Both the position numbers and the translations under genes were made by a program. DNA of 64,000 nucleotides from NCBI RefSeq assembly GCF_041956535.1, contig NW_027192197.1, positions 507,829 through 571,828 on the forward strand, read 5' to 3'. Below the pieces are notes generated by a model. It searched no databases and was not told where the DNA came from. It saw only the letters and a list, made by a program, of their open reading frames with translations. Origin of the DNA: Calcarisporiella thermophila CBS 279.70. Its lineage: Eukaryota; Fungi; Calcarisporiellomycota. Of the stretch, positions 4,363-11,736 are shown piece by piece; positions within the stretch are counted from its first letter, which is position 1, and every line of letters starts with the position of its first letter.

Positions 4363-6959
4363 ATGATAGACCCGACCTATTCCGGGATGGCTCTTCCAAA
4401 TCCTTCTACAGAACAAAAGTCCTTACAAGTCTCTTCCAGACGTTTTTCTCTGCGATTGTCTAGACAAAATAGTATGAGCAATTTAAAGGAGGATATCGTA
4501 TCAGATTCGACGACGTCGTTAACTGGGGCTACAACAACAGCGCTGCATCTTAGCACCTCCAATGGAAAACTCAAATACAGGACATTGGAAGCCGACAATT
4601 CGCCGGCACGCCGGAAAACTACCCAAGTCAATGTAGAACTCTCAGGCATATCAACCGCAACTACAAGAGCAATTAATACGACCCAATCTCCTTTGAGGAA
4701 AAGAAAGCGGGGGCATGCTAAACTCAGTCTCTCAGTAGATCCCATCAGTCATTCTTCGAATGTATCCTCGAATAGCTCTCCGAAATGCAGATTTACACAC
4801 AATAGTAGCATCCCCAATGAAAGCAATGGTAAAGGCAACAATGTAAACGGAAGGCTTTCTAAGCGTTGTGATAGTCCTCTGATAGCCTCATCGGAGGACA
4901 TGACCGACTACCAGTCTGAACCAACTTCTCCAGTAAGCGTAGCATATTCGGATCAGCGGGTTCTACGGAGAAATAGCTTAGAAAATCATGATGCGACCAA
5001 GTCTCTATCGTCTTCTCCAGCGCCGAAAATCGAGGGCTCCTTTGTGTCAACTTCTGACTTAACATCTGTTGGAAAGAGAAATTTGCAGAACGAGCCTTCA
5101 TTAAACAATGAGAACAGCAAAAACCCGCTCAATGCATCACATCCCAGTCAGTGCGTCGCCAATTCGAATGACCGCATATTGAGTTCAAATGTTGGTGGAG
5201 AGCCGGCGGGGCAGCAGCTCTATGATGACATATTTGCAACCACAGATGAAGATAGTTTATTATCAGAACCTATATTTAATCATTCTTCCTCTTCCGATGA
5301 TCTTGAACGCGGTCCACACCCAAAAACCGCCAGAACAACGCGGCGGCTGCGATCCAGGCATAGCTTAATTCGTAAACCTAATGGCCAGTCGGTCGATGAT
5401 GGATATATAGCAACAAAATCCAAACGTGTCAAGCGTTTTTCTTCTTCCAAACTCGGGCCCGAGCTGAAGGGTGCAATCCCCGACCCGGCTATCTCGAAGG
5501 ATAATATAAGACGTGTGTCGGAGGGCCTTGCTCCCGATTCGACATTGGCCCCAGGCGGAGCGGAAGGTTCGAACTCTGATTCAGTCATTAGGATAGACGC
5601 CTATCATCGCCCAAGACGAAATGCATCCAAGCAAAAACTAGTGACGAGGAGGGATATACGTACCAAGTAGGCGTTTTTGTTTCCGATTGCATGCAATGAT
5701 AAAGCTTAATGTTTAATCCTTTTCTCTTTTTTTAAGCCTTCTTTTTGGGAATCTTCAACAACGAAACGTTGATTCAGATATGGATTCCAGCAGGGTAAGA
5801 AGCAAGTGTTATACATATGATCCTCCACATCAGTTTCATGTTCTTTCTCCCATATGCAACAGAACAACGATTACTGTGAAACCTGCGGGGAGGAGGGCCA
5901 TTTTCTCTGCTGCGATTCCTGTCCGCGATCATTTCATTTCATATGCATTGACCCGCCCGTTGATCCAAATGCTTTGCCCCCTGAAAATTGGTACTGCAAT
6001 GCCTGTCGTCCCAACCTTCAACCAAAATACACGAACCGGATATTTCGAGAGTTGCTGAAATCATTAGACAGTAGAAACCCGACCGTGTTCACTCTGCCCC
6101 CACCCATTAAGACGTATTTTAAGGGAGGTAAGCTTCAATTCTTTTGCAAAAAAAGTAATTTAGATGTTGCTGATAATTACTTGCTCGCTCTTGAAAGTTG
6201 CGGAAGGCCCATCGGGGGAATACATTGACATGACGGATATAAAGTCGGCAAAACTAGGGTAAGCCAATGTCAACCTTATTAAAGAGCAATTGCATTGTGA
6301 CCTGATCTTTCTACTAGCAAAACCTGCCAAGTCGACGAGACAGATCTTCTCCGCTTAAAAGACAAAGCGGGCAACATTATTCTGTGTCATCGATGTGGTC
6401 GATCTGCCCTTGCGGGAGCAATTTTACGCTGTGATTTTTGCCCACTGGCCTGGCACCTCGATTGTCTAGATCCGCCGACGATCTGTCCTCCTCCCGCCTC
6501 TCGGAAATGGATGTGTCCCAATCACGCCATCCACGCCATTGTAAATCAATTATTTATTTTTGTCTTGAGTACACGAAGAGATCCTGATACCCTTCTCCTT
6601 TTATTATTGATTTGCTTTGCATTCCTAGCCGAGACAGAGGCACAAAAAGGTCGAGATGTACAAAACACCCCCGCATCCCTTTGTGTCCAATAGTGGAGAT
6701 ATTCAGATTGTGAATGATGTTGACACAGATGAGCATTATTCGGGGCAGGCTTTTAAGGTGCCCGAGTATGCGATCAAAGTGAAATTCTTCGAGACGGCTC
6801 GAAAGTAATGGCCACCACCATAATTCCTGTTTATTTTTTTCTGATGAAACTCAGTGCTGACTGCATCACTGTGCTCTCTTTTGTCTGTGTAGGATAAGAA
6901 AAAAGAAATATAGTGAGCGCGAAAGGCTTGAAGAGATGTCACCGAACCATATGGCATGA
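4363..6959 (+). CDS. Rco1/PHF12-like double PHD-finger protein (Rpd3S-type subunit); start uncertain
   Basis: Long low-complexity N-terminal exon, PHD1 NNDYCETCGEEGHFLCCDSCPRSFHFICIDPP...WYCNAC, RNPTVFTLPPPIKTYFKGV, PHD2 CHRCGRS...ILRCDFCPLAWHLDCLDPP...RKWMCPNH. Several GT-AG introns. Confidence 0.85.
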
Positions 6960-7583: not shown

Positions 7584-10007
7584 TCAAGCATCATCCTCTT
7601 CTTCCGCGCTCTTCAGCCAATTAATAAACACAGAGCATTTCTGCTTAACTCCATTGCTACCCACACCCTCTGGTGTAGTCTCCTCGTGCCATCTCAGGAA
7701 TGTTTCCTCCTCAATAAGGTCATTGTCATAGAGCCATTTAAAGATGACCGCGATTTTGGGTAGGAGCACACTGTTGCGTTTGTTGATGTATTTCTCCCAC
7801 GCGGAAACGAAGGCGAACTGATCGGCAGGAGATCGAATGAACTATCAGGGGGGACGCATGGGAGAGAAAAAGCAGAGAGATTAGAAGCCTAAGACATATA
7901 CACACTGCCACGCTTTGAATATATGCTTACCGCCGCAAAAAAGCCTTTCCTGGGACTTAGCACCTTCATCGCTCCCTCGGGGCGAACCTCATCGAACAAG
8001 GCTCTCAAGAGGATCTTGAAGAGTTGCGGCTTAGAGAGATCGTACCGAACCTCCATGCGTGCTACCTCGTTCGTGTCCTCCATAATGCCTTTGTTGTTAT
8101 TGGTCCCTAGTGTTTGCCGCCTCTCTTGCTGGCGCAAAAAGAACGCCTTTAGTTCCTGCGCAAGCGTGTCGTCCAAGGTGGATTTGGTATCGGGGGCCTG
8201 AACCGCCTCGGGCTTCTTTGCTGACTGGAATTTGAGGCGATCGTCAGGAGAAAGTTCAACCACCTTCATCCACGTTTTCTCTTTCTCAACCTTAAATGTG
8301 CATATCAAAGGACACGGAAACAGAATTAAAAAAAGTGATCCGGTTTGCCGAGGCTCGAATTTACCTCGTGTTGCCCGCTGAGGAACTCCTTCAGTGACAC
8401 TTTGTCCTCTCCTCGTCGTCTGGCTGTGGCTGAGGCTGAGGCTGAGGCTACTGCTGGTTTAGCATTGCTGGAAGCTTCAGAAGGGTTTGGTGACGACGCC
8501 ATCTCCGGAGCCTTTGGTAATTCCTCCTTAACCGCAGGCGAATCCGTTTGCTGTACGGGGGGAGGGGCACTGCAGTTCAGAGGAATTTTAGGGGGGAGGA
8601 AGAAAAGTGCGAGTGGGTGAAGATTAGAGCAGAAGGAAACCAAAATGAGAAGCATTCAATTAACTAGCTTACTCTCGCAGTGGTGCTGTACTAGCAGCAC
8701 GACTGGGTACATCGTTGAGGATTTCGGACCGCGCAACATGGGTCGGTTCCTGCACATCTCTGTCGCGCTCTCGCTGCCCACCAGCAGGGGCGCCCATGTT
8801 GACTTCGCGACGATCATCGCCATCTCGTCGTTCCTTGTCTTTCTCTCCAGACTCGCTGCCACTTCCCCCGTTAGTTCGCTCGAATTTTGGTCTTTCGCGC
8901 AGCTCTGAAGTACCATGGGCAAAGTTACATTTCGGGCCATACTGGCAGAACCCATCCTTCATGAACCGTTCGCAGAGTCGCGTTTTGTAAAGCGGATTCC
9001 CTGGGCCATCACGGGCCGCGACCGTACGCTCTGGCTCAGCGGGACGCTCACGCAGCTCCGCAGTGCCATGCGCAAAAGTGCATTTAGGGCCGTACGGGCA
9101 GTGGCCTTCGGTTTCAAAACGCTCGCAGAGCCGCGTCTTGTAAAGGGGATTATCCTGCTCCCGCTGCTGCTGTTGCTGCTGCTGCTGTTGCTCCCTGTCC
9201 CTGTCTCGGCTTTCCCTCTGGTGAGGGTGCTCCCGTGGTTGATTGCCTCGCTCTTTTTTTGGCTCTCCCCGGTTGCGCGCGATCGCCTGCCGCTGCGAAT
9301 CCAGGGGGAGTGCAATGTTCATGCTGCGGAATCTATTTTCCACTTCGTTCAGACTGCCCATCGATGTCGAGGAAGTACGCGAGGGAGAGGTGGGGGACTT
9401 CACGCGCCGTAATTCGACAACCGAGCTGGCCTGCTTGATGACATCCTGCATGCTGCGGTAGAGGGCCTTTTCCATGGCGTCTTGCAGGTTAAACCAGGAT
9501 ATATTGTAGCCTTCACCCGAGGGGAGGATTCGGCCATGGTCCGACAGGCGAGCTAGAAAAATGGCCACATTCTTCGGACTGTCCATTATTGAAGAAAACA
9601 ACATATTAGCAGCCATGGTAAATAAAGGGTGGAAATGGCCAAGATCAAGGCCGGGGTAAACCCGTAGTGGCACGATTCAAACATACCGGGTACCAGAGAG
9701 GTATTTAATTTCGACCTTGAAATTTTCTTCCACTCGCAGATCCTTCATCGGAATACCGGTCAACTCGAGGGTTTCCCGCAGCGCACACCTAACGGTAAAA
9801 GACGGTTAATCACCGATTCGGTAAAGACGGGCCTGTGGCGATGTACTTGATGAGATCTTCATTCCCGATGACCCGCCCCTTTGGTACTGTCCAGTGCCGC
9901 TTATGGGAGAAGGAATCGTTCAACAGGAGGAATTCAGATGTATTACGCTGCAGTCGATAAATCAGAAGGCCAGCATACACGTTCCCTGAAGGACTCAACT
10001 TATCCAT
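7584..10007 (-). CDS. Multidomain protein: Ap4A-hydrolase-like Nudix + tandem CCCH (TTP/Cth-type) zinc fingers + C-terminal W2 domain
   Basis: Exons 10007-9847, 9788-9687, 9578-8673, 8569-8365, 8290-7931 and 7841-7584 join in frame with GT-AG ends. Motifs: HWTVPKGRVIGNEDLIKCALRETLELTGI; two YKTRLC-x8-C-x5-C-x3-H fingers; W2 boxes LYDNDLIEEETFLRW and FINWLKSAEEEDD. Confidence 0.85.
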
Positions 10008-10266: not shown

Positions 10267-11736
10267 ATGATTTTTCGCCAGGCAGCCAGAGGTAGAGGCC
10301 GCATACAATTCCCACTGCTCGAGCGCCGAATGCTAACTCATCCGATCGCTCTTTCTCTTTGGAACTTGTTTTCATTTTTTTAGCTTTAACCTCTACTTCG
10401 AGTGCTTTAATGGAGTTCACCAACGCCCCCCGTCCTTCCGCTACGTATGTGATTCCATTTCGTGCATAAAGTTGCTTCATAGTTTGGTATTGATGGGCCA
10501 TCTTTTTTTTTTCTCGGCATTGCTGTCAAACAATATAAAGTATTATTATTGCGGCCCATCTCTCGGACGCACTTCGTCCGGCTGGAGGCCACGATGGTTT
10601 TGACTACAAGGTCTTGATGATACAGCGTAGCTCCCGCGGAGCATTCAAGAACTCGTACGTGTATCCTGGTATGGCATTAGAGTCGAAAAACTATATACCT
10701 ACCGGGCTATTCTCACCTCAAAGCTTATAACGTTTGGCTAGGTGGAGTAGTCGATAAAGCAGATGAAGACCCGAAATGGCTCGAAATGTTCCCCCAAACG
10801 GAACTTCCAAGGCAGGATTACGAGTCTATCAATGGCATATCGATATAGCCTCCGCTAATGTGTTTATTTCTCTAAAATAGTGGTTCCATTGCTCGCCGTA
10901 TTTGCGGTATCCGGGAGGCATTCGAAGAATGCGGCCTACTCTTGGCAGAGCCAGATGGAGAGAAGAGCGTGAAAATCGACGAGAAGGATATTGCGCGCTG
11001 GCGAGAGGAGGTTGGCGTCCATTGCAGAGTCGGTCACTACTAACTGGAGATTTACCAACTATAATGTCTCTTTGTCAATTAGGTACACAACGACGCTAGT
11101 CGATTTCTCCACATGATGAAGCAATATCATCTTCGTCCTCTGGTTGAGCGCCTCTTCCTCTTCAGCCACTGGATCACACCTACATTCGAGACAAAACGTT
11201 TTGACACACCTTTCTTTCTCATTACACTGCCGGCACTACCCTCCGGTCCCACCAACGGCCAAGATCCAACCGCTCTAGTAGCCAGTTCCTTTGCGACGGC
11301 AACTACAATTGCAACCCCAGACCACAAGGAAAATGTGCAGCTAAATTGGTTCACTCCCGCGCAGGCGCTCAGGGAGTTTGAGCAAGGAAATATCAATTAC
11401 TTCCCCCCGCAATTTTATACTCTTCAGGAGCTGAGCTGTGTCCCGAGATTGGAAGATCTCAGCCGAAAATTCGGAGCGAGAGAAGTCTCGCCGATATTAC
11501 CGGAATACCAATTTAATGAGGATAATGTGGGAAAAAAGGAAGCTAATGATGAGGATGGCCCATTCCTGGCGCTTCCTGGAGACGCTGAGCACACCTGGAC
11601 CCTTGAAGTGCCCGGCTCGATGGTAAGCAAAAGGCGACATCGAATTTACGTGGCTCCTGAAAAGCCGCCCTTCAAGAAATATAGGCTAGTGATGTCTGGG
11701 ATTGAGAGTGGCTCGAATGCGTGGTCGAAACTCTAG
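10267..11736 (+). CDS. NUDT19-like acyl-CoA diphosphatase (Nudix) with C-terminal PTS1
   Basis: PRPSATIIIA...DYKVLMIQRSSRGAFKNSYVYPGGVVDKAD, ICGIREAFEECGLLL, FSHWITP...KRFDTPFF, FPPQFYTL; ends in SKL. A second in-frame ATG is at 10410. Confidence 0.88.

Follow-up and report, generated by a model that had tools for sequence, protein, structure and literature searches.

The gene VTP21DRAFT_10492 of Calcarisporiella thermophila raises the question of what a protein does that joins a Nudix domain, two CCCH zinc fingers, and a W2 domain in a single chain. The answer favored here, with a probability of about 0.5, is that the protein would act in non-Dikarya fungi as an RNA-tethered, nucleotide-binding adaptor or competitor of eIF2 that tunes initiation on chosen mRNAs. 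The gene lies in a 64,000-nucleotide stretch of DNA that is called the window in the following.

Gene structure and range of the fusion

VTP21DRAFT_10492 (record P0191) is located on the minus strand and comprises six exons that are separated by five GT-AG introns (Table 1). The CDS of 1989 nt contains no internal stop, and the 663-aa translation of the joined exons is identical to the independently annotated NCBI protein (663/663). In the frame check of the exon model, any single intron that is kept in leads to an early stop. Pfam searches of the whole protein find NUDIX at aa 19-135 (E 1e-9), two zf-CCCH (7e-20), and W2 at aa 585-662 (2e-18); each of these passes its curated cut-off. An earlier note, made from the DNA letters, had predicted six in-frame exons for one protein of ~660 aa with all three domains on the same polypeptide, and both predictions are borne out. 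Exon by exon, exon 1 gives a weak NUDIX match, exon 3 contains the two zf-CCCH, and exon 6 matches W2. The searches used the exons singly and then the annotated protein, and joined exons served for the frame and identity checks only.

Table 1. Features of VTP21DRAFT_10492 in the window.
Feature	Position	Strand	Remarks
Exon 1 (aa 1-54)	9847..10007	-	Start codon, first half of Nudix with H38-W39-x-x-P42-K43-G44, start of Nudix box
Intron 1	9789..9846	-	58 nt, GT-AG, phase 2, within Nudix box
Exon 2 (aa 54-88)	9687..9788	-	Remainder of Nudix box; Y83 adenine stack
E59 codon (= human NUDT2 E58)	9775-9773	-	Exon 2, Nudix box
L63 codon (replaces last box Glu)	9763-9761	-	Exon 2, Nudix box
Intron 2	9579..9686	-	108 nt, GT-AG, phase 2
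Exon 3 (aa 88-390)	8673..9578	-	End of Nudix (to aa 148, base 9398), both CCCH fingers
Exon 3 linkers	within 8673..9578	-	Q/R/S-rich disordered linker before the fingers, disordered linker after
CCCH finger 1 (aa 233-258)	9068..9145	-	YKTRLC lead-in; stacking Tyr and Phe retained
CCCH finger 2 (aa 284-309)	8915..8992	-	31 residues beyond finger 1
Intron 3	8570..8672	-	103 nt, GT-AG, phase 2; agrees with NCBI model
Exon 4 (aa 390-458)	8365..8569	-	Linker, poorly conserved, predicted disordered
Intron 4	8291..8364	-	74 nt, GT-AG, phase 0
Exon 5 (aa 459-578)	7931..8290	-	Short conserved motif and first half of W2/HEAT (from about aa 491, base 8194)
Short linear motif (aa 462-476)	8237..8281	-	Family consensus K-x-W-M-K-V-V-E-L-S-x-E-E, in disordered stretch
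Conserved W2 patch (aa 532-547)	8024..8071	-	On N-terminal helices of W2
Intron 5	7842..7930	-	89 nt, GT-AG, phase 0, within W2
Exon 6 (aa 579-663) and stop	7584..7841	-	C-terminal half of W2; coding to 7587, TGA 7586-7584
AA-box 1	about 7733-7689	-	E623/E624 = yeast eIF5 E358/E359
AA-box 2	about 7628-7590	-	W653 = W391 of yeast eIF5, then CK2-type S-x-x-E tail

The order NUDIX, two zf-CCCH, and W2, for which the earlier note had suggested an architecture search, is recovered in fungal orthologs from Chytridiomycota, Blastocladiomycota, Olpidium, Zoopagomycota, and all Mucoromycota subphyla (with named members in Mucoro-, Mortierello-, and Glomeromycotina). When exon 3 is searched against 1.84 billion representatives, more than 20 clusters turn up that also match the Nudix and W2 exons in the same order. 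No member from Dikarya or from outside the fungi is among the homolog-search matches, and such searches cannot prove absence.

The poor conservation of exon 4 would suit an artifact in which gene finders merged an adjacent Nudix/CCCH gene with a W2 gene. This reading is largely refuted and retains next to no probability, given that the fusion is common to dozens of species in five phyla and that three short intron-free contigs of relatives hold the complete ORF, to which genomic loci match in pieces split at introns. Several introns are also shared in position and phase: intron 1 with the orthologs of Mucor, Entomortierella, Rhizophagus, and the chytrid Cladochytrium, intron 2 with Mucor, Entomortierella, and Rhizophagus, and intron 5 with Mucor and Rhizophagus. 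Near intron 4, phase-0 introns are found 3-5 residues off in Entomortierella and Rhizophagus; the position of intron 3, which lies in an unalignable linker, is not clearly common to relatives. As the intron-free contigs align with the relatives' loci in the way that spliced mRNAs would, and as introns are shared, the fusion gene is real, and it is conserved across early-diverging fungi.

The architecture is already published, contrary to the novelty that the earlier note implied. Pasterny et al. (2025, PMC12210691) catalogued it in BMC Genomics as the fungal NUDIX “subfamily A”, a set of 84 proteins found in fungi only, distantly related to NUDT2 and expressed in several phyla, most of which carry W2 and two zf-CCCH. 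From docking alone, subfamily A was proposed to be an Ap4A hydrolase that keeps Ap4A levels down; the paper contains no experiment on it, and the fingers and W2 are not discussed functionally. VTP21DRAFT_10492 has the same PF00293, two PF00642, and PF02020 in one protein, and the NUDT2-type residues W38, P41, G43, Y82, and K89 (human numbering) of subfamily A are W39, P42, G44, Y83, and K90 here. Its orthologs occur in the same orders as the published members, among which Rhizopus delemar EIE82761.1 is listed, and architecture, phyla, and restriction to fungi are without difference. VTP21DRAFT_10492 is thus a further member of a catalogued family. New here are the Blastocladiomycota members, the family-wide loss of the last, catalytic Glu of the Nudix box (at odds with the hydrolase function proposed in that paper), a finger spacing that departs from TTP, and a conserved patch in W2. 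A literature search with combined domain terms and member accessions found no other paper on the family and no characterized member, in agreement with the earlier note, which knew of no characterized protein of this architecture. The database names “bis(5'-nucleosyl)-tetraphosphatase” and “Cth1p” that some members bear are probably misleading.

Nudix domain and zinc fingers

The N-terminal domain is of the NUDT2/Ap4A-hydrolase type, as had been proposed. Asymmetrical Ap4A hydrolases are closest in sequence (E 5e-18), and the predicted fold matches the C. elegans Ap4A hydrolase with a Z of 20.3 and an rmsd of 1.5 Å. With NUDT2-type enzymes (human 3U53, C. elegans 1KT9) the domain shares the fold, about 34% identity, and the adenine clamp and P1-phosphate residues (described in PMC4734340). 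H38, W39, K43, Y83, K90, W116, and Y/F128 are kept family-wide. NUDT2 is a stand-alone active enzyme, whereas the domain here is fused to fingers and W2. A second difference concerns the Nudix box, where REUxEE of NUDT2 is replaced by R-E-T-L-E-L in VTP21DRAFT_10492, and the intact pattern G-x5-E-x7-R-E-U-x-E-E-x-G-U is broken by Leu63. The last box Glu is present in 0 of 104 sequences, with nearly every row having I, L, V, A, or T instead. The first Glu of REUxEE (human E58) is missing from 36 of 102 sequences, among them every Glomeromycota row shown. Because Mortierellaceae are heavily represented in the sample, these counts are not independent events, but the last Glu is lost in every sampled phylum. 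This residue is reportedly required in Ap4A hydrolases, according to mutagenesis work on the lupin enzyme. The human NUDT2 variant E58A is inactive (PMC8616924). VTP21DRAFT_10492 itself retains E59 and E62, with which slow catalysis may occur.

CFIm25 (NUDT21) is an analog in the way it works. It binds Ap4A (Kd 2.4 µM) and ATP without hydrolysis and carries hydrophobic residues at both Glu positions (PMC2425470). In its Nudix fold, as in the domain here, a hydrophobic residue takes the place of the last box Glu, and it binds RNA as well as nucleotide; it differs in belonging to another Nudix family (PF13869) and in acting in nuclear 3'-end processing, and the comparison made here is one of folds. 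The absent glutamates together with the kept pocket fit a nucleotide-binding pseudo-enzyme of this kind, and the NUDT2-derived domain probably binds adenosine polyphosphate but does not hydrolyze it efficiently. Such binding would not be universal in the family, as the Nudix domain is heavily eroded in the Blastocladiomycota ortholog from Paraphysoderma (P0228), in which fingers and W2 are present. A second Blastocladiomycota relative, from Sorochytrium (P0134), also keeps fingers and W2, and across the two the Nudix domain is eroded or undetected, which makes them a natural comparison for the role of the Nudix part.

No part of the protein is better conserved across the family than the CCCH fingers. 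Each of them singly matches the TIS11d/TTP fingers (E about 1e-16), and the YKT-x-LC lead-in, the C-x8-C-x5-C-x3-H spacing, and the stacking aromatics are shared with TTP/TIS11/Cth1-2. The earlier note had described a TTP-type tandem; its two YKTxLC-x8-C-x5-C-x3-H fingers stand, but the type does not. Fingers of TTP/TIS11/Cth2 are 18 residues apart (PMC3759886), whereas 31 residues lie between the fingers here and 26-102 in 59 orthologs, with 18 in none, and each finger resembles a repeat of a single unit. Membership in the TTP tandem zinc fingers is rejected because the linker is never 18 aa and another gene of the genome has the true TTP spacing. As the TTP spacing is missing, AU-rich-element specificity cannot be carried over, and the binding of AU-rich 3'UTR elements that the note drew from the TTP likeness is unsupported for the same reason; TTP/TIS11/Cth fingers bind UUAUUUAUU-type elements, a specificity that is putative for the fingers here. 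Judged by their sequence, the two fingers very probably bind single-stranded RNA, presumably U/A-rich, as semi-independent readers without the fixed TTP geometry. A TTP-type CNOT1-binding motif and a conserved eIF4E-binding motif were looked for in the family sequences, and neither was found.

The true TTP/Cth-type gene of this genome (L031:1054-2400, plus strand; contig C8 of assembly G000) is a single exon that encodes 448 aa with 18-residue spacing. In VTP21DRAFT_10492, a CAG/CAA run (window 9155-9190, minus strand) encodes nine glutamines right before finger 1, in an unconserved linker.

W2 domain and its conserved patch

The predicted model shows a full four-repeat HEAT-type W2 domain at about aa 488-660. 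The family W2 profile is matched best by the eIF5-CTD (1e-19), with a match that covers the C-terminal two thirds of W2, and scores 75 bits with eIF5 vs 35 bits with the 5MP-like gene of the genome. Among structural matches of the W2 model, the eIF2B-epsilon CTD ranks first (Z 16.9, 160 residues) and eIF5 reaches 14.4. The complete W2/HEAT domain, both AA boxes, and the acidic tail are common to eIF5-CTD, 5MP/BZW, eIF2B-epsilon CTD, and the protein here. In yeast eIF5, E358/E359 and W391 are important for eIF2 and eIF2-beta binding; their equivalents are E623 (59/60 rows), D/E624, and W653 (58/60 rows), which confirms the earlier claim of a C-terminal W2 with both AA boxes. K313 of yeast eIF5, which forms a salt bridge to eIF2-beta, is Ala here and variable in the family. 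A CK2-type site closes AA-box 2 in 40 of 56 family sequences and is also found in eIF5, eIF2B-epsilon, and 5MP (PMC12439599). It is fairly likely that the eIF5-like AA boxes bind the lysine boxes of eIF2-beta. AA boxes accept other basic tails as well, for instance those of MNK1/2 on eIF4G (PMC9177959), which counts against the eIF2-beta reading.

VTP21DRAFT_10492 lacks the eIF5 GAP domain (PF01873) by Pfam, which is present in the eIF5 of the genome (P0232), and it also lacks a significant DWEAR, the N-terminal helical domain of 5MP, and the eIF2B-epsilon core. 5MP/BZW proteins consist of an N-terminal helical (MA3/HEAT-like) domain that is followed by W2. Membership in 5MP/BZW is rejected since the N-terminus is made of Nudix and fingers and the W2 profile is nearer eIF5; the “eIF5 mimic” of the earlier note therefore does not hold in the sense of a 5MP member. 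As the genome has its own eIF5, along with separate genes that we take, from their sequences, to be eIF2B-epsilon and 5MP-like, VTP21DRAFT_10492 is an extra W2 protein.

The family is set apart from eIF5, 5MP, and eIF2B-epsilon by a near-invariant patch on the N-terminal helices of W2. Its family residues are K532, E533, T535, E538, K545, and Q547, with N532 and A535 in VTP21DRAFT_10492, and it maps to helices that eIF2B-epsilon uses against eIF2-gamma. E533 (53/60 rows) is at profile position 36, where yeast E569/human E577 is placed if the match start is ungapped, and hhalign gives the same register. The half of W2 with the patch is not above shuffles in its similarity to eIF2B-epsilon (hhalign P 0.046) and finds no eIF2B-epsilon among PDB sequences; the neighbors of E533 differ from the LEINxLxM of eIF2B-epsilon, with a charge reversal at E538. 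The position of E533 on that of the catalytic Glu is a hint with similarity not above chance, and an eIF2B-epsilon-type catalytic face is unsupported by sequence. The motif at aa 462-476 takes a place similar to that of eIF5 DWEAR and is rejected as its equivalent (hhalign E 0.56). Neither patch nor motif has a match in eIF5, 5MP, or eIF2B.

Functional readings and related genes

In the favored reading, three modules (pseudo-Nudix, finger pair, and W2) would be joined by flexible linkers. The NUDT2-derived domain would hold an adenosine polyphosphate, be it Ap4A, ATP, or an RNA 5' end that resembles them, without efficient hydrolysis, as CFIm25 does, and the CCCH fingers would place the protein on selected mRNAs. 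The AA boxes would bind the lysine boxes of eIF2-beta, and W2, without a GAP domain, would be a rival of eIF5 and eIF2B for access to eIF2. Holding eIF2 on bound mRNAs would lower or tune their initiation, and nucleotide binding is a possible stress input. The coupling of nucleotide binding to W2 is a guess, because the structure model (pTM 0.43, linkers with pLDDT <50) shows no readable domain-domain contacts. The contacts with eIF2-beta, the cap, and Ap4A that the earlier note had envisaged are putative.

Known W2 proteins, to our knowledge, act globally on initiation; a W2 protein with its own RNA fingers would, if this is true, act on chosen transcripts. Eukaryotic Ap4A receptors are few, and the alarmone role of Ap4A is debated. 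A family with an Ap4A pocket, without the catalytic residue, and with RNA- and putative eIF2-binding modules is a concrete candidate for such a receptor. The further step to an Ap4A/ATP sensor without catalysis that links the alarmone to eIF2 for transcript-selective initiation, possibly with eIF2 exchange activity, is unlikely. The family is present in Mucor and in mycorrhizal fungi and seemingly lost in Dikarya yeasts and moulds, and this distribution would account for the lack of studies on it.

Among other functions, an mRNA-binding scaffold for storage, localization, or decay is conceivable though doubtful. Its W2 would have a partner other than eIF2-beta, for which the MNK kinases on the W2 of eIF4G are a precedent, and its Nudix domain would serve as an RNA or protein surface. 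The strongest W2 conservation is indeed the family-specific patch, to which the motif at aa 462-476 adds, and long disordered linkers suit granule scaffolds. In the AA boxes, however, which resemble those of eIF5 most, the residues described as critical for eIF2-beta binding are retained, and the family sequences yielded neither of the CNOT1- and eIF4E-binding motifs. The published reading, an active NUDT2 equivalent that keeps Ap4A low in stress with fingers and W2 as accessories for localization, is quite improbable. Closeness to Ap4A hydrolases in fold and sequence, the kept substrate pocket, the docking preference for Ap4A (PMC12210691), and the remaining E59 and E62 speak for it, as does a first-look search of the genome in which no eukaryote-type stand-alone NUDT2 was seen. 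Docking, however, is no test of catalysis, the last box Glu is missing throughout and the first in a third of the sequences, and a housekeeping role leaves the top conservation of the fingers unexplained.

Highly improbable is an mRNA-tethered eIF2 recycler, which would sustain the translation of bound mRNAs in stress by eIF2B-epsilon-like GDP release or by displacement of eIF5. The HEAT domain of eIF2B-epsilon alone is a minimal exchange core (10.1101/503540), the eIF2B-epsilon CTD is the top structural match of W2, and eIF2B-epsilon profile matches run through the catalytic helices, with E533 at the position discussed above. Differences in Z between helical-repeat folds carry little weight, however, the overall sequence is nearer eIF5, and the shuffle comparison and the residues beside E533 argue against a catalytic face.

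The only other NUDT2-like match in the genome is an intronless gene for a 149-aa Nudix protein with an intact box (L005:1471-1920, plus strand; contig C12 of G000, about 545.6-546.1 kb), which may serve as the active Ap4A hydrolase of this fungus. All its NCBIfam matches are bacterial, MutT-type, and below cut-off, and the flanking ORFs look eukaryotic; acquisition by horizontal transfer is possible. Within the window, a second Nudix-looking gene (10550-11736, plus strand), presumably with NUDT19-like motifs, stands head-to-head with the fusion gene. No Nudix neighbor is seen in four orthologous loci, so that the pairing looks incidental. On the other side, an ORF with a PHD-finger-like Cys/His pattern (window 5854-6228, plus strand) is part of a gene that converges on the 3' end of the fusion gene.
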